DNA of 64,000 nt from IMGVR_UViG_3300012931_000759:124001-188000; one strand, 5' to 3'; shown: positions 30,561 to 60,140, numbered from the stretch's first letter. A program made the numbers and translations. The notes: generated by a model from the letters alone, not told the origin.

Positions 30561-30690
30561 GGGAAGCGGAATGGGCAGAATGGCGAAAGATAAGATGACC
30601 GGCGGCGCCCCGGTTCCGGCAGTTGCCCAGCGCCGGAAATGGCTACAGTAGCGGAGCCGGTCATTTCCATGGGAGGACGATGTTCGAGCC

Positions 30691-40194: not shown

Positions 40195-43100
40195 ATGGTT
40201 GACCAGAGCAGGCGGGCAACGGGGCGGACACCAGGACCGAAGGTCCTACGAACATCTCCCAAGCTAGCCAATGTGTTGTCGCCAATTCGGCGCGGAGCGC
40301 TACAGGACGAGGTTGAGAATGGCATAGTCAGGGAGGGCGCACAGTACGGCGGTAGTATGCTGCGTCGAGGAATTGCCGAACCTATGCCTGCGGATCTCGA
40401 CAAAGGTCTTGCTCGCGGAGTGTGGATGGAGGGGGGTCGGCCAACCAGCGGGAAGAAAGCTGCAGAGGGCAGCCAGGCCCTGATCGCGCACAGCCCATCC
40501 TTCAGAAAACAGGCCGCCGTGGGCGTGATGAATGGCGGTGTCGGCAGTACGGCCGGCGCGCCGGTGGAGCGCCTGGCGCCCGAGGTGTATTCGCCATTGT
40601 TCGTGATGGCGAACCTAAACCTGCCGCGTGATCGCATCACGGTGAATGCGTGGTGTTTTCTTCCAGGAACAATGGTGTGGATGGCCGACGGGACACGTAA
40701 GCCTATCGAGGAAATCTGTGTCGGAGACATGGTCCTGTCTGGCGAGGGTTTGCCGCGCCGAGTCACAACCGTGTTTCGGCGACATGTGGACGAGGAGATT
40801 GTTGGTCTCCGTGTCAAAAACTCGCAGGAAACTGTGTGGTGTACTACAAATCACGGCTTCAATGCCGTCAAGGCTGATGCTGTCCGCTGCCACGATAAAA
40901 CGACGTTTGTAAAATGTAAGCCGGACGGGGATGGATGTTTTTGTTCCCGTTGCGGGCGTAAAGATGACCCATATGTGTTCGGGAAAGTGGAGTCCGGACA
41001 ACTTGGAGAAAGAGACATTCTCTATATGCCGGTGCCCAAACTAGAACCGGTTTCGAATGATCCATTGTTGAGCAATCCCGAAGCCATAGAACTTCTTGGC
41101 TATTATGCCGCCGAAGGCTTCGTCGCACACAATAGGGTGACTTTCTCGCTGGGCAGTCATGAGAAGCAGTTGGCTGTTAGGATTGAGGAATTGGTCGGCA
41201 AACTGTTTGCTGAAGGTCAAATCCATACGCGATCAGACAGGTCGACGGAAATCTATGTGGATTGTTCCAATGCCAAATTGGCTGCTTTTGTTTTGCGGCA
41301 CTGCGGACAAGGCTCCCTGACAAAACGCCTGTCGTTCGAATTGATGTCGGTTGAGCCCGGATTGCTGCTGCGGTTCCTGGTTGCCTGGCTGGACGGGGAC
41401 GGTGGACAGGAAAAGTATAATTCGGGCATTTTTGTTGGCAACACTTCCTCCGAGAACCTAGCCTGGCAAATGCGAATGTTGTGTTTGCGCTGCGGCCTGG
41501 TGGCACATGTGTTCCGGGCCCATAGCCAGAAAACTATGGTTTCACCAACCAACGGGGAAACATATCCCGCTGCTCCTCGCTACTATGTTAAGATTCGTGG
41601 CAAATCAGCACTAAAACTGGCGGAATGTTTTTCGTCTGAGTTTTATAGGTTTGCCGCCATCGAACGCTCATATGAGCGCGACGGCTGCTGTTTTATCCAC
41701 AAAGACAAAGCGATCCAGTGGATCAACACCGTGAAGAGGTCAGGCTACATAGGGTTCGTCCACAATATCGAGGTTGAAATTGACCACACCTATGTGGTTG
41801 GATATGGTGTAAGTGTTCGAAATTGCAGGAATTTTTTTGATTTGCACCCGCTTGTGCGCAACGCGATCACGATGCATGCGACCTATCCGATCTCCAAGAT
41901 CAGCATCAGGTGCCAGGACAAGAAGGTTCAGCAGTTCTTCGAGGACATGATCGAGGAGATGGACCTGCTCGGGGCGCTCGGGGATATCTCACTGGAGTAT
42001 TGGAAGCTCGGTGAGGCTTTCCCTTACGCGGAGCTTGACGAGAACACGCTGAAGTGGAAGAGGATCGTCGTTCAGAACCCGGACTACATCCACGTCAAGA
42101 AGATGGTGATCGCCAGCGAGCCGGTTATCTCACTGCGTCCGGATGCCGTACTACAGCGGCTCGTCATGAGCAACAACCCAGCCGACGTCCAGCTGCGCAA
42201 GCAGATCCCGCAGCACATTGTGTACCACGTGCGCCGCGGGGAGAATATTCCCTTGGACAATTTTAACGTCAGCCACCTAAAGATGTTGTCAAGCCCGTAC
42301 GATGTGCGCGGCACCAGCGTCATTGTGGCAGCCTTCAAAGACCTGATGCTTTATGACAAAATTAGGGAATGTTTCTCAATAGATAGCGAAATCATGACCG
42401 AAAGGGGCTTCAAAACTTATGACGAGATCAAGGAGGATGACAGGCTTGCCACTTTCAACCCGGCCACTGGGATAATGGAGTTCCAACCATATACAGCTCG
42501 CATCAAAAGGCGACATGACGGGGATATGTGCCATTTTCATGGCAAGAAGGTGGATGTTCTAGTAACGCCCAACCATCGCATGTGGCTCGCTCAAAGTAGA
42601 TCGCATGGGGGCGGATATCACGATTTCGGCATTATCGAGGCCCAGGATGTTAAGAAGGGCTATTTCTACAAGTTGCGATGCGTTGCCGACTGGGTGGGCA
42701 AGGAACTGAAGACAATTTCGGTTCTCGGGCACGAAATGCCAGCCGAAACCTATATGAGAATCCTTGGGCACCTAGTAGCCGAAGGATGTATCCACTACAA
42801 GAATATCAACAACTATAAGTACAAAGTTGGCATAAGCCAAAACCTTGACCAGAATGAATTGATTTTCGGTCATATTTGCCAATCTATGGTTGATCTTGCT
42901 CGGTTTTGTGGGAAACATCTTGGAACATATGACCATAGGAATACCAAGGGGTTTTCGGTCAACAAGCCATCCGAGATGAGGAATTGGACAATTTCCAGCA
43001 AGGAACTCGCTGCCCATTTTGCCGCCGAGATTGGTACAAACAGTCACGACAAGCATCTGCCGCGCTGGGTGTTCGACTTGTCCCCGCGCCTGTTGCGTAT

Positions 43101-44451
43101 CCTGCTTGATGCCGCCACGGAGGGCGATGGGACGGTCAAGTCCAGTAAATACGGTACGGAATCTGTTGGTATCCGCTACACCACGGTATCCAAGCAACTG
43201 GCGGACGACATCCAAGAGATCGCCTTCAGGTGCGGCTATGCGCCCATCATGCGACGCGACCAGAATGGTCAAGGCAAGTGGTTCTGGGCGGTTGACTGGT
43301 CGAACACGTCTTATGGACATTTTCCCACGGTTTACGGCAATCGCAAAGCCAAGAGGAACGGTGGTGGTGCGACCTTCGAAAGGATTCCGTACAACGGCGA
43401 TGTGTTCTGTTTCGAAGTGCCAAACGGTCTGCTGGTGGTTCGGCGCAATGGGCATATCTCGATCCAGGGCAATTGTAAATTCGCGCAGGCCGACGACCTC
43501 ATCAACCCGATTACGTTGGTGAAGATCGGCGGCACGGGCGAGGGCGAGTTCCACCCGGACGACGCACAACTCGAGGCGTGGCGCAACGTTATCGAGGAGG
43601 CTCAGTACGACAAGAACTTCAAGATTGTTACTCACGCGGGCGTAGTGATCGAGCGCGTGGGATCCTCCGGAGCTGTTCTCGACATCAGCCAGGACATGGA
43701 TCTCATCATCAAGAACATCATGTGGGGTCTCATGGTACCGCACGCCGTGATCGACACTGAGAGCGCCGTGTATGCTTCGGCCTCCATTGGTCTAGAAGTA
43801 CTGCGGCAGCGATACTTCAACTTCCGCAACATGATAGCCAAGTGGTTGACGAACAAGATTTTCTCGCCCATCAGCGATCTCCAGGGATTCTATAGGGCGG
43901 AAGCTGGGTACAAGAAGCTAATCGTTCCCGAGGTCGAGTGGAACCACATGAACCTGTATGACCTACAGGATTACATCAGCAATGTCTCTAGCCTGGTGAC
44001 GGCAAAGCAGGTGTCTCTACAGACGCTGTACAGGAGCCTCGGACTCAATTACGAGGAGGAACGTCAGAAAATGCGCAAGGAGGCGATCAACGACGCTGTA
44101 CGCCAACGCGAGGAACAGGCGCTGTCCAGCATGTCCCTCCTGGAGCTTAGGTCTCTTGACCCCGAACGCGAGATCATGGAGTCTACGCAGGCGGCGCAGC
44201 CGATGGGAGGGCCCTCCATGGGCGCACCTGGTGCGCCGGGATCCGATATGGGCGCTCCGCCGATGGGTGGAGGGGCTCCCCCGATGGGCGGTGGAGGCGG
44301 CGGTCTTCCGGGAGGATTGCCCGAACTAGCCCCGCCGCCCGGTGAAGCAATGGCAGGGCCTGGTGGTGCCGGGGCACCACCTCCTGGGGGAGCAACCCCT
44401 CCGCTCGGACCGGGTGGGCCGGGGGCTCCCCCGGCAGGGCCAGGGAAGTAG
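40195..44451 (+). CDS. Portal protein (about 660 aa after splicing) with two inteins and a Pro/Gly-rich C-terminal tail
   Basis: Directly after terL; HPLVRNAI, YWKLGEAF, VSHLK..PYDVRGTS portal-like motifs. Confidence 0.8.
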   Translation: MVDQSRRATGRTPGPKVLRTSPKLANVLSPIRRGALQDEVENGIVREGAQYGGSMLRRGIAEPMPADLDKGLARGVWMEGGRPTSGKKAAEGSQALIAHSPSFRKQAAVGVMNGGVGSTAGAPVERLAPEVYSPLFVMANLNLPRDRITVNAWCFLPGTMVWMADGTRKPIEEICVGDMVLSGEGLPRRVTTVFRRHVDEEIVGLRVKNSQETVWCTTNHGFNAVKADAVRCHDKTTFVKCKPDGDGCFCSRCGRKDDPYVFGKVESGQLGERDILYMPVPKLEPVSNDPLLSNPEAIELLGYYAAEGFVAHNRVTFSLGSHEKQLAVRIEELVGKLFAEGQIHTRSDRSTEIYVDCSNAKLAAFVLRHCGQGSLTKRLSFELMSVEPGLLLRFLVAWLDGDGGQEKYNSGIFVGNTSSENLAWQMRMLCLRCGLVAHVFRAHSQKTMVSPTNGETYPAAPRYYVKIRGKSALKLAECFSSEFYRFAAIERSYERDGCCFIHKDKAIQWINTVKRSGYIGFVHNIEVEIDHTYVVGYGVSVRNCRNFFDLHPLVRNAITMHATYPISKISIRCQDKKVQQFFEDMIEEMDLLGALGDISLEYWKLGEAFPYAELDENTLKWKRIVVQNPDYIHVKKMVIASEPVISLRPDAVLQRLVMSNNPADVQLRKQIPQHIVYHVRRGENIPLDNFNVSHLKMLSSPYDVRGTSVIVAAFKDLMLYDKIRECFSIDSEIMTERGFKTYDEIKEDDRLATFNPATGIMEFQPYTARIKRRHDGDMCHFHGKKVDVLVTPNHRMWLAQSRSHGGGYHDFGIIEAQDVKKGYFYKLRCVADWVGKELKTISVLGHEMPAETYMRILGHLVAEGCIHYKNINNYKYKVGISQNLDQNELIFGHICQSMVDLARFCGKHLGTYDHRNTKGFSVNKPSEMRNWTISSKELAAHFAAEIGTNSHDKHLPRWVFDLSPRLLRILLDAATEGDGTVKSSKYGTESVGIRYTTVSKQLADDIQEIAFRCGYAPIMRRDQNGQGKWFWAVDWSNTSYGHFPTVYGNRKAKRNGGGATFERIPYNGDVFCFEVPNGLLVVRRNGHISIQGNCKFAQADDLINPITLVKIGGTGEGEFHPDDAQLEAWRNVIEEAQYDKNFKIVTHAGVVIERVGSSGAVLDISQDMDLIIKNIMWGLMVPHAVIDTESAVYASASIGLEVLRQRYFNFRNMIAKWLTNKIFSPISDLQGFYRAEAGYKKLIVPEVEWNHMNLYDLQDYISNVSSLVTAKQVSLQTLYRSLGLNYEEERQKMRKEAINDAVRQREEQALSSMSLLELRSLDPEREIMESTQAAQPMGGPSMGAPGAPGSDMGAPPMGGGAPPMGGGGGGLPGGLPELAPPPGEAMAGPGGAGAPPPGGATPPLGPGGPGAPPAGPGK
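40654..41823 (+). mobile_element. Portal intein 1 (390 aa) with LAGLIDADG domain
   Basis: CFLPGT start, CTTNH block B, LLGYYAAEG and WLDGDG, ends VRN before +1 Cys. Confidence 0.9.
42370..43473 (+). mobile_element. Portal intein 2 (368 aa) with LAGLIDADG domain
   Basis: CFSIDSEI start, VTPNH, LGHLVAEG and TEGDG, ends IQGN before +1 Cys. Confidence 0.9.
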
Positions 44452-44454
44452 CCC

Positions 44455-44907
44455 ATGGATCGTTCGGAACTCTTGTTTAGGGACGGCTGCCGCAAATGGC
44501 ATGCCTACTTCGAGCGGTGCGCGAACGATGGTCGGATGGCCGAGATTCCGCATCTTATCAGGAAAATCGCGCAATACCTGGATGCCTGGAAGGGTGGCCT
44601 CGTGGCCGCTCATCGCAAGACGCAGGAGGCTGAAAAGTACCTCCTGGAGTGCCGTCAGAAGGAGGCCTCGATCCAGTCTCGGCTGAGGCTGCTGGGGCAG
44701 CTCGCCGCCACCATGGATAGCAGATTTGCCGAGAGGAGTCAGCAGGAGCGTTTTGTCAGGAGGGAGCGCGCGCTAGCGGCGGCCGAAACCTGGAGGCTGG
44801 TGGAGGGAAAGAAGCGGGAGGAATCCGAGCGGGAAAGGCTCGAGAGGGCTGAGAGGCACATGGCCGCACAAGAGCAGGAAGGCAGATCCGGAGGCGACAA
44901 TGAATAG
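44455..44907 (+). CDS. Hypothetical coiled-coil protein
   Basis: Fills the gap after the portal. Confidence 0.65.
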   Translation: MDRSELLFRDGCRKWHAYFERCANDGRMAEIPHLIRKIAQYLDAWKGGLVAAHRKTQEAEKYLLECRQKEASIQSRLRLLGQLAATMDSRFAERSQQERFVRRERALAAAETWRLVEGKKREESERERLERAERHMAAQEQEGRSGGDNE

Positions 44908-46081
44908 GGAAATAACATTTGCCAAGATCGCCGCTATGGCGCAGCTGCTGGACGATCACGGGCTACACGACGACGCCACAGTTATGGATGAAGTGCTGGA
45001 GGCGGCCGCGTTTCCCGGCATCCTCAAGGAGGCAGGATTGTGGAAGAACATCTTGTCCAGGCTGAGCGGCTGGGCGCGTAAGGTCCTTTTTAGTGAGTAT
45101 CGCGAGATGTACGATATGGCTGAGGAGGCCCAGAACGCACTCGATGAGCGCATCGAGGCACTCCAGGATGCCAACAAGGAACTCAAGGCCATGCTGTCGC
45201 GTCACGAGCTTCCCGAATGGCGCAAGAATATTGCTACCATCATCGCTGGTGTCGGCGAGAATGCGGATGAGGTCATGTCCGACTATGATTCGCTCCACGC
45301 GAAGATGACGGCGCGTCTGCTGAAGCTCGCCCCGGCGGCCAAAAAGAGGGAAAAGAAGCCAACAACGCCCGCGCTGCTACCGAAAGAGGAGGGGGAAAAG
45401 GAGGAGCCCAAGTCCCCAGAGAAGGCCATAGAAGAGACCTTAGTTCCCGAAAAACCGGCCGAGCCAACCAGCATCCCGGAGGAGCCGATTCCCCTGACCG
45501 AGGTCAAAAAGAAGCCGACGCCGGAAGCGCCCCCGGAGCCTGCGCCAGCCCCGAAGCCAACTCTCGCTCCGGTAGCTCCGCTACCCAACTGGAAAAAAGA
45601 GAGGTTCGGCACTAGCGGCAAACATGGCTGGGAATGGGAATGGGAAGTGTCACCTGACAACAACCAGCTGCGCCTTCTGAAGAGCCAGCTGGCTGCTGCC
45701 TCCAGCGGCAAGGGGAAGGTCCTACATAGGCATGGGGATAAGTACCGCCCGACCGGTGGCACGTCCAGCATTAAGCTGCGTAAACTCATGGGCGGCACGT
45801 TTTGGGAGATGGACGACGACCCCTCTGATCCAAACATGGTGATCCTGACGCGTACGGAAGAGGTTGTACCTTTTCCGCTGTCGATGCGCCAGGAGCCGGT
45901 CGAACAGGCCAAGAAGCTTAAGGAGCTCGGCAAGTCTTCCAAAGAGCGGATGAACCGACTTGTGACCATTGCTGTCGGCAGATCGGCCGGGGAAGAGATG
46001 AGCGAGGAGGAGAAGCTCGACGTGGCCGCCGAGGCTCTGCTCGAGGGTTTCGAATCCGAGGAGACCGAGGAGGAAATTTAG
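44900..46081 (+). CDS. Hypothetical putative head protein with N-terminal helical tag
   Basis: AKIAAMAQLLDDHGLHDDATVMD..LKEA; Pro/Glu/Lys-rich linker; acidic tail. Confidence 0.8.
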   Translation: MNREITFAKIAAMAQLLDDHGLHDDATVMDEVLEAAAFPGILKEAGLWKNILSRLSGWARKVLFSEYREMYDMAEEAQNALDERIEALQDANKELKAMLSRHELPEWRKNIATIIAGVGENADEVMSDYDSLHAKMTARLLKLAPAAKKREKKPTTPALLPKEEGEKEEPKSPEKAIEETLVPEKPAEPTSIPEEPIPLTEVKKKPTPEAPPEPAPAPKPTLAPVAPLPNWKKERFGTSGKHGWEWEWEVSPDNNQLRLLKSQLAAASSGKGKVLHRHGDKYRPTGGTSSIKLRKLMGGTFWEMDDDPSDPNMVILTRTEEVVPFPLSMRQEPVEQAKKLKELGKSSKERMNRLVTIAVGRSAGEEMSEEEKLDVAAEALLEGFESEETEEEI

Positions 46082-46083
46082 TT

Positions 46084-49000
46084 ATGGCGTGGCCATCCCT
46101 TTCGCGACGCGCTTCCCCCGGCATATCCCCGGTGGCCCTGATGCGCCTGACGGAGATTGATGATCCTGATGAACTACTCAAAAAGTTCAACAGAGATGAT
46201 ATTATAGTAGAACATAAATACGATGGCTGGAAGGCGCAGATCATCAAGGACGGGGAAAAGGTCCGCATCTTCAGCAGGCGCGGCGAGGAGGTCACTGGGA
46301 ACTTCCCGGCGATCGCCAAGGAGATGGTTGGTCTTCCTGACGGTACCCTTGTCGAGGGCGAGCTGGTCTACTGGGACAAGGGCAAACAGGATGTGACGAA
46401 GGTAACGTCCCTTGCCGGAAGCTCGGTCGACAAGGCCTTGGAGAAAGTGAAGGGGCTGCCCGGCAAGATGAAGCTCCATATCTACGACATCCTGTGGCTC
46501 AAGGGCAAAAACGTGGCCGACAGACCCTTCTCCGAGAGGCGCAAGCTGCTTGAGTCGGCTGTGAAGACCTCCGATACGGTCCTCCTGACAAAGCAGTACC
46601 CTTTCGCCAAGTGGCAGAATGCCATGAACACGGCAGTCGGCCAAGGTGGCGAGGGCATCGTACTCAAGCTCAAAGGCACCAAGTACCAGTACAAGCCCAA
46701 GGGCGAGTCCGAGCCAAAACCAAAAGATACGATGTGGAAGTATAAGGGCGGGGCTGGCAAGCACGACTCCGACGACTATGTGGTCTACGGCACGACCAAG
46801 AGCAAGACCGGCAAGCTCATGGCGCAGTTCGGCCAGTACTACAAGGGCAAGCTGTACGCCATCAGCGAGATCGACAACTTCTCGGCCGAGAACGAAGCCG
46901 AGATCGAGAAGCGCCTGAAAAAGGGTCCGTTCGTCATCGAAATTGGTTTCCAGGAGCGCGTGCCGGGCGGGCTGCGGCACCAGAAGTTTCTCAGGTTTCG
47001 GGACGACAAAAAGCCCAAGGATGCCACCATGCACGAATTCCATGCGGAGCATATCGGCGAGTTCGAACCAGCCAAGATGGAGCGGAAAGCAATGTTTGCG
47101 CTGGCGGGTACTCCCGATCTCGCCAAACTTGTTACGACGCTGGAACGGGCGGTTGGAAAAACAGACCCCATGAAGACGGGACCGACAAGGATCGGCGACG
47201 TGGGTGGTGTGGATGGCGACAAACTGTTCCAGCTCGTATCCAAACTTGAATCGAACGGTAGGACAGATGTTGTAGGAGACGCTGGAACGTCCTTTGGACC
47301 GACACAAATTCATGGGCCCTACCTCCTGGCCAGGCTTGCTGGAATGTCCGGCGCGCAGGCGGCCACCGGCTTGTCGCCCGATGAGATGCGCAAACTCTCC
47401 TCTTCCTGGCTGGACACCCTGAGGCAGCTTCGCGGCGCGCGCGTTTGGAAAGAGGTTCCAGTAGATCAGGACGAGGCGCGGAGATTACCTAGGATCAAGC
47501 GCCTGGAGAAGACCTTTATCCGCAGGCCGGATATGGTCATCGAGCAGAGGGACGGCCGGTATGTCGGTCGCATCTTGGATCTGGACGCCCTGCGAAGCCT
47601 GGGCTTCGATGTCGACTCGCAGATCTTCAGGAACGCCTTGCGCAGGATCTACGCGGAGTACATCACCGACAATGTCGCACTTAGCGGCCTGGCCCAGGCC
47701 CATCTGGGCTCCTTGGCCCCCGAGGCCTTCTACAAGTTCAAAAGGCAGTTCAACCCCGCCGGTATCCGGAAGAACAAGCCCCTAGCATCCCTGCTGGAGA
47801 GGGCCTCAACTAGCGACCTAACCAGCAGGATCGCTGCCGTGGTCCGGATGGTCGAGAAATCCGGGTACGACACGACTGCGCCGGGCGCGTTCAGCATCCC
47901 GCAGCTGGTCTTCATCGCCAACGGGAGCGGTATAGGGCGGGTCCAGCAGTTCCTCATGGACAGGAAGCCCTTCGCGCCGGGGAACTTACACTACCTACAG
48001 AGCCCCAGGTTTAAAGCCGCCATGAGCGCCTTTGTGAAAAACGATCCCGATCTTCGTGGAATGGCCACCCAGCTGCTCGCCGGGCTTCCTTCCGGCGACG
48101 GCATAGCTGGCTTTAAGGGGGAGGTTGCCGCTCGCATCGCGGCGCTGCTCGGGGCGGACAGCGAAGAGATCAGCCGGTCCGATGCAGTGAGGATGTTAAC
48201 GTTCGCCGACGGCCATCCAGATCGAGGGCGTGGCCGCTATCCGCGCTGGAATCCGGCCCTCCAGGCCCGCGAGATCATGAACTTGGTCGACCGCTGGCTG
48301 AACTATGAGAACATCCGGCCAATTGACCTGAAGGCGGTGGGCGTGACGCTCATTCGCGTCGACAGGGAGCAGGATCCGCCAAAGCTCGTCCTCTGGATCA
48401 TGGGGGACATTCAGGCGCTACAACGCCTGCTGCCGAGAAAGATGTGGGGCATGCCCGTTGTTCTACACTCCGACATCCCGAGGGCGACAACGGAGCTACC
48501 GGCCGTCACGGAGTTCGAGGAGGAACCGACGCTCGTTGACGTGGAGTCAAGAATGCCGACTAAGCTGTTCCAGGAGTACAGTGATCTCCTGGTGCGGGTA
48601 CGCGCCGAACTAAAGAGGACGCACAGGCACGTTCCCGAGGATCAGCTAAGACGTACGGTCTTTCTACACATTGCCGAGGAGCTGGGATACGATCTCGGGG
48701 AGCTGGAGAGAACCCTGGGTGAGCACGCCTGGCTCAGATTCTCCCATTGGCAGCCTCCTTTGTCCAAGCTGGCGATGGGCAATCGTGGCGTGCTCGCGTT
48801 CCCTGGACAGTACGCTGAGGATATCAAATCCGGCAAGATGGAACGGACGATCAGGCCTGGTGACATGCCGGTCGAGCCGGAGGAAGTGGTAGACGCTATC
48901 ACCTATTCGGGAGGACCTATTTGCCGGATCAAGATTCTGCTTAAGGAGATCATGAGCCTGCCGCGTCTCGCCAAGGCGTTCGGCAAGCATGTGGCCAGGT

Positions 49001-49980
49001 CCCTCGAGCACCGTTTCGGGCCGGACAGGCGCTTTATGGTCATCCGTTTCACTCGCTTCGGGGAGCAGGATGCCGACGACGGTGAACTTGACGAGAAAAA
49101 GCGCGGCGAGATCCTGATCGACAAGGATGGGATCGAACTCACGCGCGGGCAGATCTACGACCACTACGCCAAACCAGCGATCCGCAAACAGATCATGTCC
49201 CGCATCAAAGGCAAGCCTGTGCTAGTCTATCTTGGTGTGGGCAAGAACGAGAAGATCTTGAAGCGCAACCATGACAGTAAACCCATCGTCATTTCCAGCG
49301 ATGACCCAAAAGGGGATGGAGACAGTGGAAATTACTGGTACTGGGTCAAACGTCGGCTATTGGCTATTCATCAAGTGTTCGGTACGAAAACAGGTATTGG
49401 TTTTGTCGACCTGGATCTACATGGCGGATACCCACTCGATAAGAGCAAGGAGTACGCTAGGAAGGCAGTTGCGGCCATCAAGGAAAAGTATGGCGTTCAG
49501 CCGAAGGTCTACCAGAGTGGCGGCACTGGGCTCCATGTGGAGTTTGAGCTTGGCAAGGAGGTTGGTATCGACGGCCTGCGCAAGGAGTTGCGTGAGCTGC
49601 TCGACAAACTGAACGAGGATTTCGAGGGCGCGACGACCGGCCTTGTGAAGGGAAAAGGTATGCGGACGGATGTGAGTACACTTCACAACAAGGGCAGCCT
49701 ACGTGTGCCTGGTTCATTGGGTGAAACTTGGGGCAAGATGAAAAAGTCTTTGTCCCAATCGACCGATGACGATTATCAGAATGGGCAATTTGGTGGCAAA
49801 TATTCGGACACTGGCCCATTTGGCGATGGTGGTTCTATTGTGCCTATGCCCTATCAGTCTTCGGCTCCCGAACAGGTCGGAGCTGCGACGGCCTCTGAGA
49901 GAATCAAGTTATTCCGAATTGTTGCGCAGCAGTACGATGATGAAGTGAAGCCTGGAACAATAGCTCCTGGAAAATTTTGA
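46084..49980 (+). CDS. Mosaic protein: ATP-dependent DNA ligase + lysozyme/transglycosylase-like + unknown + ASCH + LigD-type primase-polymerase
   Basis: EHKYDG, EGELV, YDIL, EGIVLK, LRH..F.RFRDDK; LESNG..GDAG.SFGPTQI; LAFPGQYAEDIKSGK..TIR; FVDLD, SGGTGLHV, RVPGS. Confidence 0.85.
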   Translation: MAWPSLSRRASPGISPVALMRLTEIDDPDELLKKFNRDDIIVEHKYDGWKAQIIKDGEKVRIFSRRGEEVTGNFPAIAKEMVGLPDGTLVEGELVYWDKGKQDVTKVTSLAGSSVDKALEKVKGLPGKMKLHIYDILWLKGKNVADRPFSERRKLLESAVKTSDTVLLTKQYPFAKWQNAMNTAVGQGGEGIVLKLKGTKYQYKPKGESEPKPKDTMWKYKGGAGKHDSDDYVVYGTTKSKTGKLMAQFGQYYKGKLYAISEIDNFSAENEAEIEKRLKKGPFVIEIGFQERVPGGLRHQKFLRFRDDKKPKDATMHEFHAEHIGEFEPAKMERKAMFALAGTPDLAKLVTTLERAVGKTDPMKTGPTRIGDVGGVDGDKLFQLVSKLESNGRTDVVGDAGTSFGPTQIHGPYLLARLAGMSGAQAATGLSPDEMRKLSSSWLDTLRQLRGARVWKEVPVDQDEARRLPRIKRLEKTFIRRPDMVIEQRDGRYVGRILDLDALRSLGFDVDSQIFRNALRRIYAEYITDNVALSGLAQAHLGSLAPEAFYKFKRQFNPAGIRKNKPLASLLERASTSDLTSRIAAVVRMVEKSGYDTTAPGAFSIPQLVFIANGSGIGRVQQFLMDRKPFAPGNLHYLQSPRFKAAMSAFVKNDPDLRGMATQLLAGLPSGDGIAGFKGEVAARIAALLGADSEEISRSDAVRMLTFADGHPDRGRGRYPRWNPALQAREIMNLVDRWLNYENIRPIDLKAVGVTLIRVDREQDPPKLVLWIMGDIQALQRLLPRKMWGMPVVLHSDIPRATTELPAVTEFEEEPTLVDVESRMPTKLFQEYSDLLVRVRAELKRTHRHVPEDQLRRTVFLHIAEELGYDLGELERTLGEHAWLRFSHWQPPLSKLAMGNRGVLAFPGQYAEDIKSGKMERTIRPGDMPVEPEEVVDAITYSGGPICRIKILLKEIMSLPRLAKAFGKHVARSLEHRFGPDRRFMVIRFTRFGEQDADDGELDEKKRGEILIDKDGIELTRGQIYDHYAKPAIRKQIMSRIKGKPVLVYLGVGKNEKILKRNHDSKPIVISSDDPKGDGDSGNYWYWVKRRLLAIHQVFGTKTGIGFVDLDLHGGYPLDKSKEYARKAVAAIKEKYGVQPKVYQSGGTGLHVEFELGKEVGIDGLRKELRELLDKLNEDFEGATTGLVKGKGMRTDVSTLHNKGSLRVPGSLGETWGKMKKSLSQSTDDDYQNGQFGGKYSDTGPFGDGGSIVPMPYQSSAPEQVGAATASERIKLFRIVAQQYDDEVKPGTIAPGKF

Positions 49981-50025
49981 ATATCAGTTTGTGTAAATAT
50001 TTGAGATCGCTCAACATTATGGAGT

Positions 50026-53000
50026 GTGGTGCTGATGGTCAGCCTTCGTAGACGAATCCTCATGCTGGTGGCCCCGAAAGGGTTCTTTGAACCCGAATAT
50101 TCGGCATCACGTGCCGTGTTTGCCGATAGGGGCATCGATGTGGCCGTGGCCACGGCCGGTAAGTCGGCTGTGAGTGCGCAGGGCACAACCATCAGGGTCG
50201 ACCTTGACGTAGCGGACGCTGACGCAAAGGACTTCGACGCACTGTTTGTGGTCGGCGGCAAAGGTATGATCGAGTTTTCGGACGACAAGGCCGCTAAGCG
50301 CATCCTGCGCAAGTTTGTGCGCGTCGGCAAGCCGGTAGCCATGATCTGTCACGCCCCGCTCTTGGCGGCAAAGGCGAAGGTTGCTGCCGGTCGGCAGATG
50401 ACCGGATGGCCAGAGATCCGTCCCGATATGGTGGCCTCCGGAGCCAAGTGGACCGGCATGCCGGTGGAGCGGGACGGCGATCTGTTTACAGCCGTGGGAC
50501 CGGAGGATGCCGAATCCCTCGCCGACATCCTGGTCCGGCGGATGGATGGTGCCCCGACGCTCTCCGAGGCAATGTTAGATGACAACGCCGCCATGCGCAA
50601 ATTGGCGCGCCTGTGGCGCGCCGCAGCAAGGCTCGACAAGCCGATGACGGACGAGGAGGCCGAGCGCTGGTTGACGGAGTTTGAGCGCAGGGACGAGGGC
50701 GAGGAGGAGCCACCTTCTGAACCTACCACTCCCAAGCCGGTTCTAGCACCCGCGCCGAAATCGGTCCCGGCGCTCGCCGCCAAACCCAAACCTGAACCAG
50801 AGTTTACGCCCGACCCAGAGAGGCGCGATCAGATCACACATAAGCCGAAAAACGAATGGAATATTGTGGTGGAGCTTCGGCCACCCCGCACAGACGGCGG
50901 CTGGCCGGAACTTCCCGAGACCCCTCCAGTCGGATTCCCGTTCCCAGCTGAGGCGCTGAAGGACAGCCCTTCCATCAGGGCGCTATTCCAGAAGCCTGAG
51001 ACCTGGCGCGCACTCAAAGAGATTGCCGCCAATCCCAACAAGAGTGGTACAATACAGTCATACCTCGTGCCGACGCTAGTGCTCGTTATCGGCAAGGCCT
51101 GGTGGGAGATCAACAAGCGTCGCAAGCAGCTCGGCAACGCGCCGTTCGGCCTTTTCTCGTCCGACGAGTACAAGACCATACAGGACGCCAATGTCCCCAT
51201 GGAGGAGACGCAGATTGGACGGGCCTTCATTGCGCTGATCAACTGGCAGGTTACCAAGATACTCCAGTTCTACCTCGCCACCGGCAAGATCGAGAATGCT
51301 CGGCTGGATGGCTATATCTATGACGCCCTGAACAAGCACATGGTGAACGATGCGGGCAAGCGGCACGGATTCGAACCCAAGCGCCAGCCCGCCTGTGCCT
51401 ACTGTCGCAGCAAGCGCGTCATAGAGACGACGCCTCCGTTCCTTTCGCAGATCGGGACGCACACTGTCCAGGAAAGGAATCTGACGCGAAGCCGTCCCCT
51501 GTTCAAGTGCCCAACCTGCGAGGATCTGATCGAGACCAAGGAACAGGAGCTTCGCCTGAAGGAACAGGGTGTCCGCAACGCGGAAGAGAGTTTGCGCGAT
51601 ATAGCCAAGAATGTCCGGAACACCAAGGACAATCTGACCAAGGATCCGGACAGTGCCGAGCTGAAGCAGCGCCTGGTGAACTATGAGGCTATGTTGGCCA
51701 GCTACCGCCCACAGGTAGAGGAACTTGCCAAGGAGCGCAACACCCTGAAGGGCGAGATCCAGAACAGGCGCAATATGATAGGCGTGCCTTATTCGCATCT
51801 CTCTTGTATTAACGAGGCCTGCCCAGGCGCCGCTATACCCCTCACGTTCGTGGACTGGGACAACTCTTTCTGGAAGACGCCTGCTGGAGATGTGGCCAGG
51901 CGTGACCTAGCCAGCTTCTACCACATCGAGAAGAGTCCCGAAGGTCAGAAGGCTGAGGATGCGCCACAGGAAAGCGTTCAGCCTACATCTGAGCGCGCCG
52001 GGAAAAAACCGCCCCCGTGGATGTGGCACATTCCGTTCCGCTGCCCGTTTGATGGGCTTGTTTTCACGCCGCATGAGGCATTCGGGAAGGGGCGTGTCGG
52101 CGAGGACGGGACAAGACTTGGTGGCTTGTTTGTTAACCCGCCTCGCGCCACTAGGTGGTGGAAGCCGATGTCTCTCGAGCAGCAGCGGATGCCCGATGAC
52201 GAGGGCCAGAAGCAGCGCATCGAGGAGATCCGGTCGTTGACCGGTATCGAAACCACCACGGACTCGCCGGATTTCCTGCGCTCTCAGGAGATGAAACAGG
52301 AGAACGCCTGGCTGGCGGACCGCCTGCGCGAGGATATCCTCCGGCAGAGGGAAAATTTTATGAAAGAGCGCGGAACGCTTGAGGGCCATCGCGAGGTCAA
52401 GCTCCGCAGGACTATGTTCGACGCTTTGCTTGAATGGGCATATCTACATCCCATACATCTTGTGGCATTCTATAGCGCGCGTTCCCAGGCTACACAGAAG
52501 CCGCAGACGCACGTGCCAGTCGGCACCGAGCCAGTTGTGGACGGAAAGAGTGGGGAAGTCAAGGAGCATCTCGACGAAAAGAACATTAAGATGTCCCCAA
52601 AGCAGGCCGAGCGGATCATCTCCGCAATCATACAGGTGTGGTTCGAGAAGATGCTGGCCGAGAAGGATGGGCTGACCATCCTCAAAGGTAGGCCGGGCAA
52701 AGGGCGTTCAGGCAAGCTCACGGGACAGGGCAACTACCTGGCCATCAAGGAAGTCGACGGCGTAGAGCCGGACGGCTTTTTTGTCACGACGGTACAGCGA
52801 GCGTTGGACGGGCAGCTCGAAGCGCTTTGTAATCTCCGCACAACCAGCCCTAAGACTCGCGGGGCCGGATACTACCCCGCTCCATGGATGGCGCTTGTAC
52901 AGGGTATCTGGGACTACGACGGCCCAGCCGAGCGAATGGGTATCTCTATGCCCCTCGTGGAGGGGCAGAAGCTGGTCGCGGGCAAGAGAAGCCATCTCCA

Positions 53001-55344
53001 CGAAATGGAGACCCACAACAGCCATGGCATCCGATTCGACCCCGAAACGACGCTGAAGGAGGGGGATCGCATTGTTGTGAAGGCCCTGCTGATGCCGCGT
53101 AACTCCTCCTGGCCTCCCAATAAGTTCGTTAGCCATATCCGGCAAGGTCTGAAGTGGGACATCGGCGATGCCAAGGTCTACTACTCGGCGCTGCGCCGCC
53201 GCCAGAAACCTAAACCCTCGGACGAGCAGGTTATGGCCTTCTGGACGAAAAAGATGCAAGAAGCCAACATGACCGAGAAACTTGAGAAGTTTTATGAGAC
53301 GGTATACGACAGGCTGCGCCACAAGGAGGACCTCTCGGCTTTCGAGATAAGGCTGTTGGAGCAGTTTGAGCAAGCCAAGGAACAGGAGGCGTCCGACACC
53401 ATGGTTTCCGAAGCCAAGGATCCCCTCGCAAAATACCAGGGCAAGCGCGAATTCGACAAGACCACGGAGCCGAAAGGTAAGGAGTCGGAGGGTGGGAACA
53501 GGTACCGCTTTGTCATCCAACTACACCATGCCAAGAAAGCGGGTGACCATTACGATTTACGCCTAGAGAACGACGAGGGCGCATTGTCGTCGTGGAGTAT
53601 CCCGAAGCACCGGCTACCCAAGGGCAAGGAGAAGTTGCTCGCTGTCAGGACCGAAGACCATCCGGTCGAATACCTGAAGTTCAAGGGCGAAATCCCGGCG
53701 GGCGAGTATGGGGTCGGCACGATGGAGATCCACGACTCGGGAACCTACGAGGAGATCGAGGCCGGCAAGACCAAGATCGTCTTCTGCTTGAAGGGAAAGA
53801 AGGAGAAGGGGGCCTACAAGTTATTCCGGGCAGGCGAGGGAAACAAATGGATGGTGATGGAACATACAGAAAATAAACAGGAAAAGAAAGAGGCAGCCTG
53901 TGGCTCGAGTGTAACTCTATTCTCCAAACGAATTGGCAGTGTTCCGTTGTCAAAGATGGCGGCGCACAGTGGTGCGATGTTGGCTCTCATGGCTCCGTCG
54001 GCCATTGCCAGGAAGATGCGCAAGGCCAAGATGGTAGAGGACGAAGATCTGTCTGATACCCTTCACATGACTCTGTTGTACCTCGGGAAAGCTGCTGACC
54101 TCAGCAAAGAGACGCTGGAAGCAGTCCGGAAGGCGGCAGAGAAGGTGTGCGAGCGGCACGACCCGCTAAAGATGGGTGTTTCGGGTGCCGGGACATTCAC
54201 TCCGGAAGAAGATGGCACTCCGGTATACGTGGTACCTAATGCGAAGGGATTGAGCGCTCTACAGGCCGACCTGGAGAATGTTATCGGCAGCATCGTCGAC
54301 CTGCCCTCTGAGCACGGCTGGGTTCCGCATATGACTGTATGCTACTGCCGCGACGGGAAACCGGAACTCCCAGACCTGACGGAGAAACTGGAGTGGACCG
54401 CTGATAAGGTGCGTCTACAGGCTGGTGACGAGAAGATCGCGGACATTCCCATTGGCCGCAGGAAAAAGGGTGGAAGCGAGCTTCCGCTGTCCAGGCGGGC
54501 TGCGCTGGAGCGGTTGCCGATAGCCGCTGATCCTGTAATGTGGACGGATGAACAGTTGGTGGAAGCCGTCCGTCGACCGGAACTGTTCGGAAACGACAAA
54601 GATCGGTATCGGGCAGCAGTCGAACAGTTGGCCAAACGCGGTCTGGTGAAAAAGGTGGAGCCAACAGACATCGGCGAATGGCGTGAGCGCGGTTGGTGGC
54701 TACTAATGTGGGCGGGGATCCCACTCGCTTTCTACAACAACGATGCTGCTGCCAGTATGGCTAAACGGCTGCTCGCAGAGGATTTCGCCAAGGACGGCAC
54801 GCAGCCTATTGCTGCGCGTAAGTTTGATCCGATCCATTCCCGTCTGCGTTGGCAACTCGACGAGGTCATGGATCTGGGCCCGGCCGAGGACTACGAGGAG
54901 GCTGATCACCGGCGCGGTAGGGCAGGAACGGCCGTGGATGAACTGGTTACGCATCCTATGTACGCAAAACGGCGCAGGGAATTCGCCGAGAAGGCATTGA
55001 ACATCGCCAAGGCTCCCGCTGGTTTCAGACCGTTCAAAGAGTCGGTTCCCTCAGGTGCGCGACCAACCGAAACTAACGCTGACGCAGCTGAGGCTCGCAT
55101 CACGGACATGCGGTTCGGTAACACCCTGCCGGAGTTTACTGGACCGCTGGTGGATTCCCAGGAGGCTGCGAAGGACGCCGGTGACGAACTGGTCGAGGAC
55201 ACCGCCAAGAGACTTGCCAAGCGGCTGGAGGCCGAGCGGGCCGGTCTAGATCCTGAAAAACTGGCGGACGACGATGCGCTGGAACTAGCCCTGATCGAGC
55301 CGGACGAGGTTCCGCTCTCGAAGCGGACGGAAACATACCAATAA
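50026..55344 (+). CDS. Mosaic protein: DJ-1/PfpI + multi-zinc-finger domain (paralogue of 10351..12372) + LigD 3'-phosphoesterase + 2H phosphoesterase + unknown domain
   Basis: AMICHAP; FVIQLHHA..HYDLRLE..SWSIPK..AVRTEDHP..Y..F.GEIP.GEYG.G; LHMTL and PHMTV. Confidence 0.85.
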   Translation: MVLMVSLRRRILMLVAPKGFFEPEYSASRAVFADRGIDVAVATAGKSAVSAQGTTIRVDLDVADADAKDFDALFVVGGKGMIEFSDDKAAKRILRKFVRVGKPVAMICHAPLLAAKAKVAAGRQMTGWPEIRPDMVASGAKWTGMPVERDGDLFTAVGPEDAESLADILVRRMDGAPTLSEAMLDDNAAMRKLARLWRAAARLDKPMTDEEAERWLTEFERRDEGEEEPPSEPTTPKPVLAPAPKSVPALAAKPKPEPEFTPDPERRDQITHKPKNEWNIVVELRPPRTDGGWPELPETPPVGFPFPAEALKDSPSIRALFQKPETWRALKEIAANPNKSGTIQSYLVPTLVLVIGKAWWEINKRRKQLGNAPFGLFSSDEYKTIQDANVPMEETQIGRAFIALINWQVTKILQFYLATGKIENARLDGYIYDALNKHMVNDAGKRHGFEPKRQPACAYCRSKRVIETTPPFLSQIGTHTVQERNLTRSRPLFKCPTCEDLIETKEQELRLKEQGVRNAEESLRDIAKNVRNTKDNLTKDPDSAELKQRLVNYEAMLASYRPQVEELAKERNTLKGEIQNRRNMIGVPYSHLSCINEACPGAAIPLTFVDWDNSFWKTPAGDVARRDLASFYHIEKSPEGQKAEDAPQESVQPTSERAGKKPPPWMWHIPFRCPFDGLVFTPHEAFGKGRVGEDGTRLGGLFVNPPRATRWWKPMSLEQQRMPDDEGQKQRIEEIRSLTGIETTTDSPDFLRSQEMKQENAWLADRLREDILRQRENFMKERGTLEGHREVKLRRTMFDALLEWAYLHPIHLVAFYSARSQATQKPQTHVPVGTEPVVDGKSGEVKEHLDEKNIKMSPKQAERIISAIIQVWFEKMLAEKDGLTILKGRPGKGRSGKLTGQGNYLAIKEVDGVEPDGFFVTTVQRALDGQLEALCNLRTTSPKTRGAGYYPAPWMALVQGIWDYDGPAERMGISMPLVEGQKLVAGKRSHLHEMETHNSHGIRFDPETTLKEGDRIVVKALLMPRNSSWPPNKFVSHIRQGLKWDIGDAKVYYSALRRRQKPKPSDEQVMAFWTKKMQEANMTEKLEKFYETVYDRLRHKEDLSAFEIRLLEQFEQAKEQEASDTMVSEAKDPLAKYQGKREFDKTTEPKGKESEGGNRYRFVIQLHHAKKAGDHYDLRLENDEGALSSWSIPKHRLPKGKEKLLAVRTEDHPVEYLKFKGEIPAGEYGVGTMEIHDSGTYEEIEAGKTKIVFCLKGKKEKGAYKLFRAGEGNKWMVMEHTENKQEKKEAACGSSVTLFSKRIGSVPLSKMAAHSGAMLALMAPSAIARKMRKAKMVEDEDLSDTLHMTLLYLGKAADLSKETLEAVRKAAEKVCERHDPLKMGVSGAGTFTPEEDGTPVYVVPNAKGLSALQADLENVIGSIVDLPSEHGWVPHMTVCYCRDGKPELPDLTEKLEWTADKVRLQAGDEKIADIPIGRRKKGGSELPLSRRAALERLPIAADPVMWTDEQLVEAVRRPELFGNDKDRYRAAVEQLAKRGLVKKVEPTDIGEWRERGWWLLMWAGIPLAFYNNDAAASMAKRLLAEDFAKDGTQPIAARKFDPIHSRLRWQLDEVMDLGPAEDYEEADHRRGRAGTAVDELVTHPMYAKRRREFAEKALNIAKAPAGFRPFKESVPSGARPTETNADAAEARITDMRFGNTLPEFTGPLVDSQEAAKDAGDELVEDTAKRLAKRLEAERAGLDPEKLADDDALELALIEPDEVPLSKRTETYQ

Positions 55345-55667: not shown

Positions 55668-56864
55668 ATGTCAAAAAAGAAGGCAACTCCCGATAACAAT
55701 CTACAATCTGTCAATCCTGAATTGGCGAAAGAGTGGCATCCGACCAAGAATGGGAGTCTGAAGCCGACAGAGGTCTTGCCGTATAGCCAAAAGAAAGTCT
55801 GGTGGAGTTGTGTCAAAGGGCACGAATGGTCTGCCGAGATAGGAAGCCGTTCACAAGGGTACAAATGTCCATATTGTTGGGGAAGATTTGCTACGCCCGA
55901 GAACAATCTTGCGATTATACATCCGGAAGTGGCCACAGAATGGCATCCGATGAAAAATGGCACCTTGCGCCCAATCGATGTGACACCATTGTCGAGCAAA
56001 AGGGTGTGGTGGAAATGTACCAATGGGCATGAAAGATGCTCAACGGTAAAAAGTCGTGTGCGCGCTAATGGATGTCCGTGTAAAAAAGGCAGGTTGTTTT
56101 CCCAAGAACACAGTCTCGCCGCACTTTTCCCCAAAGTAGCGAAACAATGGCATCCAACCAAGAATGGCCGCTTGGCGCCCTGCGATGTTGGCCCCAGATC
56201 AAACAAAATTGTATGGTGGATATGTGAACAAGGACATGAATGGAAAACATTCGTATATACGCGGACAGATGGATGGGGGTGTAGGATTTGTAGTGGGCGA
56301 GTGGCAACTTCCGAACACAATCTAGAAATCGCATTTTCTGACATAGCATTACAGTGGTGTTTAGTAAAAAATGGTTCTCTGAAACCTTGCGATGTAACCC
56401 CGCATTCAGGCACAAAAGTGTGGTGGAAATGTATAAACGGGCATGAATGGGAAGCGGCTATCTGTAACAGGACAAGCACCAACAAGACAGGATGTCCATA
56501 TTGTTCCACACGCGTCTCCAAGGGTTGTGTGAAATGGCTTGACAGCATTGGGTTGCCGAACGATAGCCAGCATCGAGAAGTGATATTGAAAGCGGGCAAA
56601 CACTGGTACTGTGTTGATGGGTTTGATAAAGATATAAACACAGTATATGAATATCTTGGAGACTTTTGGCACGGCAATCCTAATAGGTTTAAACCAACTG
56701 GTGTAAATCCACAATGTAAAGAAACATACGGGTCATTGTTGTTAGGAACAGTAGACAAGTTGAATAATATTTACAACGGCGGCTTCAAAATTATATATAA
56801 GTGGGAAAGTGCCGCCAATCATCAGGTATACAAGCCTGGAGTGATAAGCGCATCGGCGCATTGA
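55668..56864 (+). mobile_element. Putative homing endonuclease: four zinc-ribbon (DUF4379-like) repeats plus C-terminal nuclease
   Basis: 4x L...P..A.EWHP.KNG..VWW.C..GHEW..C..C; C-terminal VDG..VYEYLGDFWHG; AT-rich. Confidence 0.75.
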
Positions 56865-56873
56865 GGCGCATCC

Positions 56874-57581
56874 ATGGAGAAGCAGGCTAACATAGTCAAG
56901 ATCGCCTTCATCCGCAAAGTGAAAGGTAAGGGATGGTGCGTTTTTGCCCACCGCAAAACCAAAAGCGGAAAACGCCAGAATTTCGGATGCTACAAATCGA
57001 AGGCGGCCGCGAAAAAACGCCTTGGTCAGATCTATTTCTTCAAGGGTCGCGGAGCTTTGGATGGCATGATCGGCATTGCGGATGACTTGGATCGCAGGGG
57101 ACTTCTCCATTTCGCGGACGCCCTGATGGATAGTCTGGAGCAGATCGTGGCTGCCAGCCTAGGCGAGATATCTGAGCGCCCGGTCTCCGTGACCATCGGC
57201 AAGATCGCCTCACTGCTGGAGAAAAAGGGCGAGGCAGCGCTCGCAGAGCGGCTGGACAGTCTTCTGCCAGCCGTGCTGGATGTGGAGTGTGGCGGAGTTG
57301 ACTGCCCCGACTGCCCGGACATGGTGGTCGAGGCCGATCTCGGCCGCTGCGGCGGCATCACTAGGCAGGTGTCCGCCGACAAGCTGTATGCGATGGCGGC
57401 CCGCTGCCGCCAGATGTACCGCGAGGGCATGATAGACGAGAACAGCTTCGAATACAGGAAGTTCCGTGAGCTGCGCTATATGCTGCGCACTGGTTTCCTG
57501 TTCCCGCCCCCTGAGGGACAGGGCGTCCCAAAGGACGCCGCGAACTGGTGGGACCATTTCGAGAAGGAGGCGGGCGAATGA
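56874..57581 (+). CDS. Hypothetical putative head protein with basic N-terminal module and two helical tags
   Basis: EKQA/VKIA; IRK..GWCVF..NFGCY..AKKRL.QI.FFK; IADDLDRRG, IASLLEKKG. Confidence 0.8.
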   Translation: MEKQANIVKIAFIRKVKGKGWCVFAHRKTKSGKRQNFGCYKSKAAAKKRLGQIYFFKGRGALDGMIGIADDLDRRGLLHFADALMDSLEQIVAASLGEISERPVSVTIGKIASLLEKKGEAALAERLDSLLPAVLDVECGGVDCPDCPDMVVEADLGRCGGITRQVSADKLYAMAARCRQMYREGMIDENSFEYRKFRELRYMLRTGFLFPPPEGQGVPKDAANWWDHFEKEAGE

Positions 57582-60137: not shown

Positions 60138-60140
60138 TTA

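Follow-up and report, generated by a model that had tools for sequence, protein, structure and literature searches.

A huge-phage protein with DNA ligase, divergent lysozyme-like, ASCH, and primase-polymerase domains: a possible capsid-delivered repair protein

Introduction

IMGVR_UViG_3300012931_000759 is a linear IMG/VR virus record of 340,392 bp, estimated to be 84% complete, and the runs containing it are wetland metagenomes. The window analyzed here is the 64,000-nucleotide stretch at positions 124001–188000 of this record, and coordinates are those of the window unless the genome is named. On its plus strand, the open reading frame (ORF) 46084–49980 encodes a protein of 1298 amino acids (aa), called P0001, in which DNA ligase, lysozyme-like, ASCH, and primase-polymerase domains lie in one chain. 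An original prediction, made from the DNA alone, argued that a cell-wall hydrolase and DNA-repair enzymes act in different compartments, and that such a chain makes most sense as a virion polyprotein that is cleaved. The locus therefore raises the question of why a phage would build these enzymes as one protein and where the protein acts.

Giant proteins encoded beside portal and terminase genes were described by Iyer, Burroughs, Anand, de Souza, and Aravind (2017; PMC5512222), who proposed that they are packaged, injected, and sometimes processed. In these polyvalent proteins of phages or mobile elements, each polypeptide carries between two and fifteen effector or enzyme domains that are unrelated to one another, and lysozyme/transglycosylase, primase-polymerase, and 2H phosphoesterase domains are listed among their components (PMC5512222). 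The reading favored here is that P0001, with the product of the next ORF (P0023, 1772 aa), forms a polyvalent protein that is delivered by the capsid, is probably processed, and brings a repair kit like that of bacterial LigD. We regard this reading as evenly balanced between right and wrong, and we infer the packaging, cleavage, muralytic activity, and repair role that it assigns to P0001 and P0023.

Integrity and domain order of P0001

The frame is open throughout without interruption. Its ATG lies 2 nt past the preceding stop codon and 10 nt downstream of GGAGG, a Shine–Dalgarno sequence. The parts of the ORF are as follows; low-confidence linkers are those with a low predicted local distance difference test score (pLDDT) in the structural model.

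46084–49980, plus strand: whole P0001 ORF, 1298 aa, with ligase, lysozyme-like domain, variable region, ASCH, primase-polymerase, and conserved tail
46084–46140, plus strand: N-terminal leader, aa 1–19, kept in 18 of 21 homologues and holding LSRRA (aa 6–10, 46099–46113)
46159–47058, plus strand: ATP-dependent DNA ligase, nucleotidyltransferase (aa 26–207) and OB (to about aa 325) domains, by Pfam, PHROG, and PDB
47077–47091, plus strand: ligase/lysozyme-like junction MERKA, aa 332–336, a variant of the LSKRA motif
47185–48138, plus strand: divergent lysozyme-like (family-1 lytic-transglycosylase-like) domain, aa 368–685, with about 170 aa of insertions
48139–48753, plus strand: variable region, aa 686–890, with the degenerate motif ISRSD (aa 696–700), a small alpha/beta domain (about aa 720–800), and a helical domain (about aa 818–888)
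48760–48774, plus strand: pre-ASCH junction LSKLA, aa 893–897, in a linker with pLDDT below 50; alignment column P-[LFI]-S-K-x-[AG]
48790–49068, plus strand: ASCH domain, aa 903–995 approximately, by PF04266 across the family; G917, T922, and R924 invariant
49081–49758, plus strand: LigD-like archaeo-eukaryotic primase-type (AEP) primase-polymerase, aa 1000–1225 approximately, by PF21686 across the family
49759–49923, plus strand: Gly/Asp-rich C-terminal tail, aa 1226–1280 approximately, with conserved positions

The same architecture, which the original prediction had proposed to seek in other phages, occurs in 21 full-length homologues of 1234–1408 aa with identical domain order and 39–81% identity across aa 330–1298. 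They come from other samples, in JGI, ENA, NCBI, and Logan, on contigs of up to 442 kb. A protein cluster look-up of P0001 returned no names. The ORF itself is intact as first called. A Logan contig of 67.6 kb from a wetland metagenome, built by a different assembler, matches 45500–50500 with no differences and no gaps (its run may be the source sample), and the exact protein is also recorded on a 210-kb contig of a second assembly. It is vanishingly improbable that the ORF is an assembly or frameshift artefact joining unrelated genes. Nothing was found in favor of this idea, the sole oddity being the JGI gene call, which begins P0001 at M20 and leaves out the leader. Against it stand the identical contig from an independent assembler, the 21 homologues of the same order, and even longer fusions in relatives.

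The lysozyme-like domain

Residues 335–900 of P0001 had no match in Pfam, PHROG, or PDB sequence and profile searches, and the family profile for the middle segment retrieved no PDB entry. PF01464 was absent from P0001 and 21 members even at an E-value of 1, and a scan of the genome was likewise negative. Therefore, the domain is filed as lysozyme-like or lytic-transglycosylase-like and not as a PF01464 member. The fold assignment comes from modeling. From the alignment of 21 sequences, AlphaFold2 modeled aa 335–900 (566 residues) well over about aa 374–664, and aa 368–685 modeled alone reached a pLDDT of 93.5 and a predicted template modeling score of 0.87. In structure comparison of this domain model, the matches aligned 130–146 residues each, scattered across model residues 1–300, and all 50 matches listed were lysozyme-superfamily proteins or T4-lysozyme fusions. 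The 566-residue model pointed to the same kinds of structure with lower Z scores. Among the matches listed, the nearest structures were all muramidases, transglycosylases, chitosanases, or chitinases. In a shape search of the ESM Atlas, seven of the ten nearest clusters carried SLT or destabilase families and three were unnamed. Six small viral clusters (129–164 aa) in this top ten had template modeling scores, normalized by the hit, of 0.54–0.66. These findings indicate that, as modeled, the middle segment is of the lysozyme-like alpha+beta fold. The insertions include a beta-sheet subdomain (model residues 88–131) and several helices.

The original prediction had picked out the peptide at 47245–47313 as resembling the catalytic Glu and G-x-x-Q of lysozyme-like folds. 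This peptide is aa 388–410, at the coordinates given. Its Glu389, encoded at 47248–47250, is the candidate catalytic residue in the model. Only one residue follows it in the first long helix (11–23 in model numbering). Judged from aligned ranges, Glu389 lies 0–3 residues from E478 of Slt70, E64 of MltE, E217 of MltC, and E503 of Pseudomonas aeruginosa Slt; the catalytic positions of these enzymes were taken from E. coli sequences and PDB titles (E64Q, E503Q). E389, D399, G405, N613, and G616 are invariant in all 23 domain representatives, some of which are only about 30% identical, while Q408 is present in 22 of the 23 and residue 390 is Ser or Thr. The Glu and G-x-x-Q are more than a chance resemblance because they are conserved across such distant representatives. 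Glu389 is followed by S-F-G-x-T-Q and I-A-N-x-S-G in the order of the SLT motifs G-L-M-Q and A-Y-N-x-G. With the insertion deleted, hhalign placed L-E-S, S-F-G-x-T-Q, and I-A-N-x-S-G in register with SLT E-S, G-L-M-Q, and A-Y-N-x-G, at a non-significant probability of 1–2% (P 0.03–0.07). Thus, the lysozyme-like fold and the conserved residues of the original prediction stand, and sequence methods do not place the segment in the SLT/GH23 family.

The known family-1 lytic transglycosylases (SLT, GH23) include Slt70, MltC, MltE, MltF, phiKZ gp144, and the N-terminal domain of T7 gp16. The P0001 domain shares with them the lysozyme-like fold and apparently also a Glu-Ser at a helix end and a later G-x-x-Q and N-x-x-G in the same order. 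In T7 gp16, the lytic transglycosylase domain sits in an internal virion protein of 1318 aa. The P0001 domain differs in lacking significant sequence or profile similarity to the family and in its roughly 170 extra residues. When its profile was searched against 1.84 billion cluster representatives, 26 proteins were found, most of them 1900–3800 aa long.

P0001 and P0023 as a split giant protein

The next ORF downstream of P0001 encodes further enzyme domains.

50026–55344, plus strand: P0023, 1772 aa, second half of the P0001 unit, fused with P0001 parts in P0025–P0039
Within it, plus strand: DJ-1/PfpI domain, aa 9–169 (Pfam, E 2e-34; Cys107-His108 present)
Within it, plus strand: LigD 3'-phosphoesterase, aa 1165–1268 (PF13298, E 1.3e-25)
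Within it, plus strand: 2H phosphoesterase, aa 1341–1464 (Pfam, E 7e-16)

In BLASTP alignments, long fused relatives, referred to as giants, carry P0001 segments followed by P0023 segments in one chain. For example, P0038 (3163 aa) aligns with P0001 aa 11–1267 and then with P0023 aa 282–1279, and the same arrangement is found in P0032, P0025, P0039, P0037, P0029, and P0031. The fused relatives are 2181–3824 aa long and have up to eight domains; P0001 has four recognizable ones. The conserved tail of P0001, in which D1229, N1233, G1237, K1239, G1250, A1270, R1273, and F1277 are invariant, is kept internally in the giants, which align through aa 1262–1275. In a closer relative, the unit is divided into three ORFs. 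On these alignments, P0001 and P0023 are two parts of what, in related huge phages, is one giant polypeptide. Read-through from P0001 into P0023 was rejected, as the two ORFs share a frame with two in-frame stops between them.

A core of about 850 aa in P0023 (about aa 280–1140) is conserved in all fused giants and contains two CxxC pairs (aa 457 and 495), further invariant Cys and His residues, and a coiled coil. In Atlas, PDB profile, and Pfam searches, it gave coiled-coil noise only. In addition, aa 1312–1481 match positions 400–561 of the 861 of phrog_18402, annotated as a head maturation protease (E 1.6e-9). This match falls on the 2H part, and therefore 2H is fused to a head protease in some phages.

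The constant core of the family is the lysozyme-like domain followed by ASCH, found in 19 of 20 long members and often separated by only about 15–25 residues. The ligase and the primase-polymerase are optional. The variable region between the two core domains is missing in several relatives, and ASCH follows the lysozyme-like domain almost directly in P0024, P0030, P0035, P0039, and P0040–42. The ASCH assignment is made at the family level. PF04266 matches 14 of 21 members (best E 2e-8), three of which have precomputed matches, and P0001 itself scores 12.6 bits, below the cut-off of 21.2 (E 0.22). The family profile gave weak matches (E 0.36–0.41) to ASCH structures of the YqfB / N4-acetylcytidine amidohydrolase type. 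An ASCH domain had been proposed at 48775–49060, that is aa 898–993, and the ASCH-like segment coincides with it.

ASCH is a modified-base or RNA binding fold. The lysozyme-like glycosidase fold and the adjacent ASCH domain could be imagined to act on sugar-modified nucleic acid, for instance by trimming or reading a glycosylated DNA modification during repair. Their adjacency in 19 of 20 long members is in keeping with such a role, the remaining domains all act on nucleic acids, and a UDP-glucose/GDP-mannose dehydrogenase gene in the window hints at sugar-nucleotide metabolism. Against this explanation, no GH23-like fold is known to us to act on DNA, and the closest structures are the muramidases, transglycosylases, chitosanases, and chitinases named above. 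Breaching of the cell wall, moreover, accounts well for the lysozyme domains of polyvalent and internal virion proteins (PMC5512222). Action on sugar-modified nucleic acid is very improbable, and delivery by the capsid remains the favored reading.

The LigD-like modules

The call of a DNA ligase at the N-terminus of P0001 holds. PF01068 matches aa 26–207 (E 1.4e-31) at 110.2 bits, where the cut-off is 26.2, phrog_114 covers aa 25–356, and ligases in PDB match at E-values down to 3e-20. The P0001 ligase has no separate DNA-binding domain. All nucleotidyltransferase motifs and motif VI of the OB domain are invariant in the family alignment of 21 sequences (K45-x-D47-G48, E91-G-E93, E190-G-x-x-x-K195, K219/K221, and R304-F-R-D-D-K309). 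We take these to be motifs I, III, IV, V, and VI as established for the superfamily of covalent nucleotidyltransferases. Outside the window, genome positions 30049–31467 encode another ATP-dependent DNA ligase, a standalone protein of 472 aa (phrog_114, E 1.7e-34) that is probably the replicative ligase. Because it exists, the P0001 ligase is not considered to be the replicative one.

The polymerase domain of the original prediction was identified, at the family level, as an AEP primase-polymerase. PF21686 matches all 21 members (best E 2e-8), with P0001 alone scoring a sub-threshold 14.9 bits. The AEP motifs I (D1109-x-D1111), II (S1145-G-G-x-G-L-H1151), and III (D1196) are invariant, and PriS aligns at motif II in a weak match to the family profile.

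P0001 and P0023 together hold all three modules of bacterial LigD with their signature residues (PF01068, PF21686 in 21 of 21 members, and PF13298). In contrast to LigD, the modules are spread over two ORFs and interleaved with the lysozyme-like, ASCH, DJ-1, and 2H domains. The P0001 ligase is also nearer to archaeal and eukaryotic Lig1-type domains (E 3e-20) than to the LigD ligase (E 2e-6). A further difference from bacterial non-homologous end joining is that the three enzyme modules are present and a Ku gene was not found in the 84%-complete genome.

The LSKRA junction motif

A short motif recurs at the domain boundaries of the giants, with the consensus K-x-[A/K]-S-F-x-[L/I]-S-K-R-A. The pattern [LIVFM]-S-[KR]-[KR]-[AGST] occurs 37 times in 19 giants (45,150 residues), compared with 4.1 +/- 2.1 in shuffled sequences and a maximum of 11 in 200 shuffles. 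In P0025, P0026, P0027, P0029, P0031, P0032, and P0038, it stands before the lysozyme-like domain and again 3–12 residues past its end. LSKRA lies 8–12 residues ahead of ASCH in P0025, P0027, P0029, P0031, and P0032; in P0026, it coincides with the beginning of the segment that aligns with ASCH. P0001 has L-S-[K/R]-[R/L/M]-[A/T] at aa 6 and aa 893, and distant giants begin with M-F-P-L-S-K-R-T. In P0023, the copies at aa 1299 and 1308 separate the phosphoesterase from 2H, the copy at aa 1488 follows 2H, and the one at aa 1764 is at the C-terminus. The column of MERKA reads ISRKA in P0011 and LSKRA or LSKRG in P0025 (334), P0038 (339), and P0032 (332). MERKA adjoins the disordered start of the first model (aa 335–340, pLDDT below 50), and every motif site in P0001 lies in or beside the lowest-confidence linkers. 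The constraint acts at the protein level because synonymous codons vary between copies, and a DNA-level explanation was rejected on the same observation. A short invariant linker motif, placed at domain boundaries and at the start of the split protein P0001, would look like a protease-processing code.

Beyond the giant pair, the strict form P-phi-S-[KR]-x-[AG] occurs eight times in the genome against 2.0 expected. Seven of the eight copies fall within 30691–63345 of the window, and three are at or near the N-termini of other ORFs. Weaker matches outside the portal region were dismissed as chance because they are located in HNH endonucleases. The ORFs concerned are listed below.

30691–31698, plus strand: ORF with MSQPISKRA at its extreme N-terminus
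60819–61202, plus strand: ORF of 127 aa with two tandem copies, the strict site at aa 17 and a looser PLSKRS at aa 5–10
61852–63345, plus strand: ORF of 497 aa with the N-terminus MIPLSKRA and a PTP/DSP-type phosphatase domain

The products of these three ORFs may be co-processed or co-targeted cargo. Relatives retain the motif in orthologous pieces, and L004 lacks it in both the giant and the orthologue of ORF 60819. Near the giant of L002, a 953-aa protein combining topoisomerase I and 2H (L002 16411–19272) starts with MIMLSKRM and has two internal LSKRA/ISKRA sites. Atlas and tblastn searches with the motif-bearing 335-aa ORF and a 393-aa neighbor ORF were uninformative. The DJ-1/PfpI domain was set aside as the processing protease, as P0025, P0026, P0027, and P0031 carry LSKRA and have no DJ-1 match.

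The N-terminal copies recall, by analogy, capsid-targeting leaders, and this leads to another explanation of the motif. The pair may be packaged and injected uncut, in the manner of the N4 virion RNA polymerase, with LSKRA serving as a capsid-targeting or docking signal (on portal or scaffold) or as a site of Ser modification. A position 2–5 residues from the N-terminus in ORFs 30691 and 61852 and in P0001 fits a tag no less well than it fits a cut site. The Ser is present in 36 of 36 copies and is followed by two basic residues, and motif-bearing ORF 61852 has a phosphatase domain. There is also precedent, since the N4 polymerase enters the capsid unprocessed (PMC5512222). On the other hand, a tag need not recur three to six times per chain, exactly at domain boundaries. 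The chain has also been split repeatedly in evolution and the P0001 start keeps the motif; therefore, some of the pieces work apart. Uncut packaging is considered unlikely, and processing at the motif is retained in the favored reading.

Genome neighborhood

P0001 lies behind the terminase and portal genes.

38332–40182, plus strand: large terminase (phrog_675, E 9e-58)
40195–44451, plus strand: intein-containing portal, 1418 aa (phrog_16240, E 1.6e-45; LAGLIDADG and Hint intein domains)
44455–44907 and 44900–46081, plus strand: two small ORFs between portal and P0001

The order of portal, one to three small genes, and giant is seen in all four relatives for which DNA was fetched (L002–L005). 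In L003, terminase and portal were both identified by Pfam and are followed by two small genes and the giant. In L002, L004, and L005, the order is taken to recur because the gene located one to three small genes before the giant ends in a Gly/Pro-rich C-terminus, like the portal of the window.

This position bears on the possibility that the chain is a cytoplasmic repair or replication multi-enzyme outside the virion, an analogue of LigD made after infection, in which the lysozyme-like domain would serve structure or binding and have no part in passage through the cell wall. The DNA enzymes of the unit (ligase, primase-polymerase, and phosphoesterase) are cytoplasmic, a DNA polymerase III alpha gene lies within the window, the lysozyme-like domain has diverged beyond the reach of any sequence model, and Pfam scans found neither a capsid nor a protease gene nearby. 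Several features speak against this role. The post-portal position is conserved, a separate standalone ligase is present, and the constant core of the family is the lysozyme-like domain with ASCH and not the ligase. Moreover, the candidate Glu and two other SLT-like motifs are invariant in very distant relatives, which would argue for retained catalysis. A purely cytoplasmic enzyme is therefore judged quite unlikely. An Amidase_2 gene at genome positions 336163–336648 is a candidate endolysin, and because of its presence the lysozyme-like domain is not needed as one. Capsid delivery continues to be preferred.

Other genes of the window are the following.

14842–18294, plus strand: phage-encoded DNA polymerase III alpha subunit, 1150 aa, PHP and DnaE
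24971–27799, plus strand: UDP-glucose/GDP-mannose dehydrogenase gene, also intein-bearing
55668–60815, plus strand: cluster of homing-type endonucleases directly after the giant pair (HNH 55668–56864, HNH 58150–59016, and GIY-YIG/NUMOD3 60141–60815)

Discussion

In the favored reading, the P0001/P0023 unit would be loaded into the capsid, where a phage protease would probably cut the chain at LSKRA-type junctions. The pieces would be released with the DNA on infection. The lysozyme-like module would open peptidoglycan locally for entry, and ligase, primase-polymerase, and phosphoesterase, aided by 2H, ASCH, and DJ-1, would mend and reseal the entering genome where it is nicked or broken. Such repair would precede any phage gene expression. 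Healing and sealing of the entering genome is suggested because the proposed cargo holds the three LigD activities together with ASCH and DJ-1. For the cleaved virion polyprotein of the original prediction, the support is indirect: it comes from the place of the gene behind the portal in related phages, from the split or fused state of the chain in different relatives, and from the enrichment of the LSKRA-type motif at domain junctions and at the N-termini of neighboring proteins.

Several results weigh against this reading. Regarding the lysozyme-like domain, its family was compared by hhalign with an alignment of five SLT sequences (E. coli Slt70, MltE, MltC, and MltD, and T7 gp16); with or without the insertion, the result was non-significant, at probabilities of 0.3–1.6%. 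Foldseek, a route suggested in the original prediction, returned nothing significant with the 566-residue model against PDB and AFDB clusters or with the domain model against PDB and BFVD, a few SLT-named entries in the AFDB list reaching only E of about 0.5. Regarding the motif, two of four junction motifs (MERKA and ISRSD) are degenerate in the P0001 clade, and the P0041 and P0042 lineages have no canonical motif. In the 84%-complete genome, no Pfam match to a prohead protease (S78, S77, ClpP, or S49) or an HK97-type capsid was found, PF04586, PF03420, PF00574, PF01343, and PF05065 all being negative. A search of this genome for Ku (PF02735) was also negative even at an E-value of 1, and therefore the classical end-joining pathway is incomplete. 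Gene order in jumbo phages is mosaic, and homing endonucleases and metabolic genes occur within the same stretch. Finally, no cultured relative was found in a phage collection, where matches were confined to the ligase part with a coverage of at most 24%.

The closest known theme is that of the polyvalent proteins, to which P0001 is similar as a giant chain of unrelated enzymes in the virion-gene neighborhood of a portal-terminase phage. There are also differences. The text of PMC5512222 mentions neither ASCH nor DJ-1, three mentions of ligase in it concern RNA ligases, and two relevant comparative papers are silent on ASCH, LigD, and DJ-1 in this context. Modules of the zincin-like metallopeptidase, MuF, ART, and N4-type RNA polymerase kinds were not detected in the present case. 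The lysozyme-like module forms a family of its own, rich in insertions, with 26 clusters among 1.84 billion representatives. The polyvalent theme is thus known, while the domain composition, the cryptic lysozyme-like family, and the junction motif appear to be new. As far as we know, no defined junction motif has been described for polyvalent proteins.

A second comparison is with the Dar proteins of phage P1 (DarB and DdrB) and the internal proteins of T4. These are packaged in the head and co-injected to protect the DNA; processing by a head protease is known, and in T4 a short N-terminal sequence serves for targeting. They differ from P0001 in having methyltransferase/helicase and ParB-like domains and in blocking restriction, not repairing DNA, and they have no sequence relationship to it. 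This comparison draws in part on PMC5512222.

A bolder form of the favored reading can be put forward tentatively, although on balance it is doubtful. A huge-phage clade would pack the LigD-like kit as a giant precursor, and a head protease would cut it at an F-x-L-S-K-R-A code that also tags other cargo. The kit would then be injected through a hole made by its own lysozyme-like module, and the genome would be resealed after restriction or CRISPR attack. If this were true, it would reveal counter-defense by pre-loaded repair together with a new processing signal for capsid cargo.

If P0001 and P0023 are capsid cargo, they would be, to our knowledge, the first case of a phage whose genome enters the cell together with a DNA ligase, a gap-filling polymerase, and end-cleaning phosphoesterases. 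Repair, and not inhibition of host nucleases, would then act as an immediate-early counter-defense. If the chain is cytoplasmic, it remains unusual in how it re-assorts LigD modules, and its conserved lysozyme-like/ASCH core still calls for an explanation. As modeled, the lysozyme-like module represents an uncommon branch of the lysozyme superfamily, rich in insertions and missed by sequence methods. The LSKRA motif provides a testable handle on the processing or targeting of giant phage proteins and could help to predict which proteins uncultured huge phages carry in the capsid.

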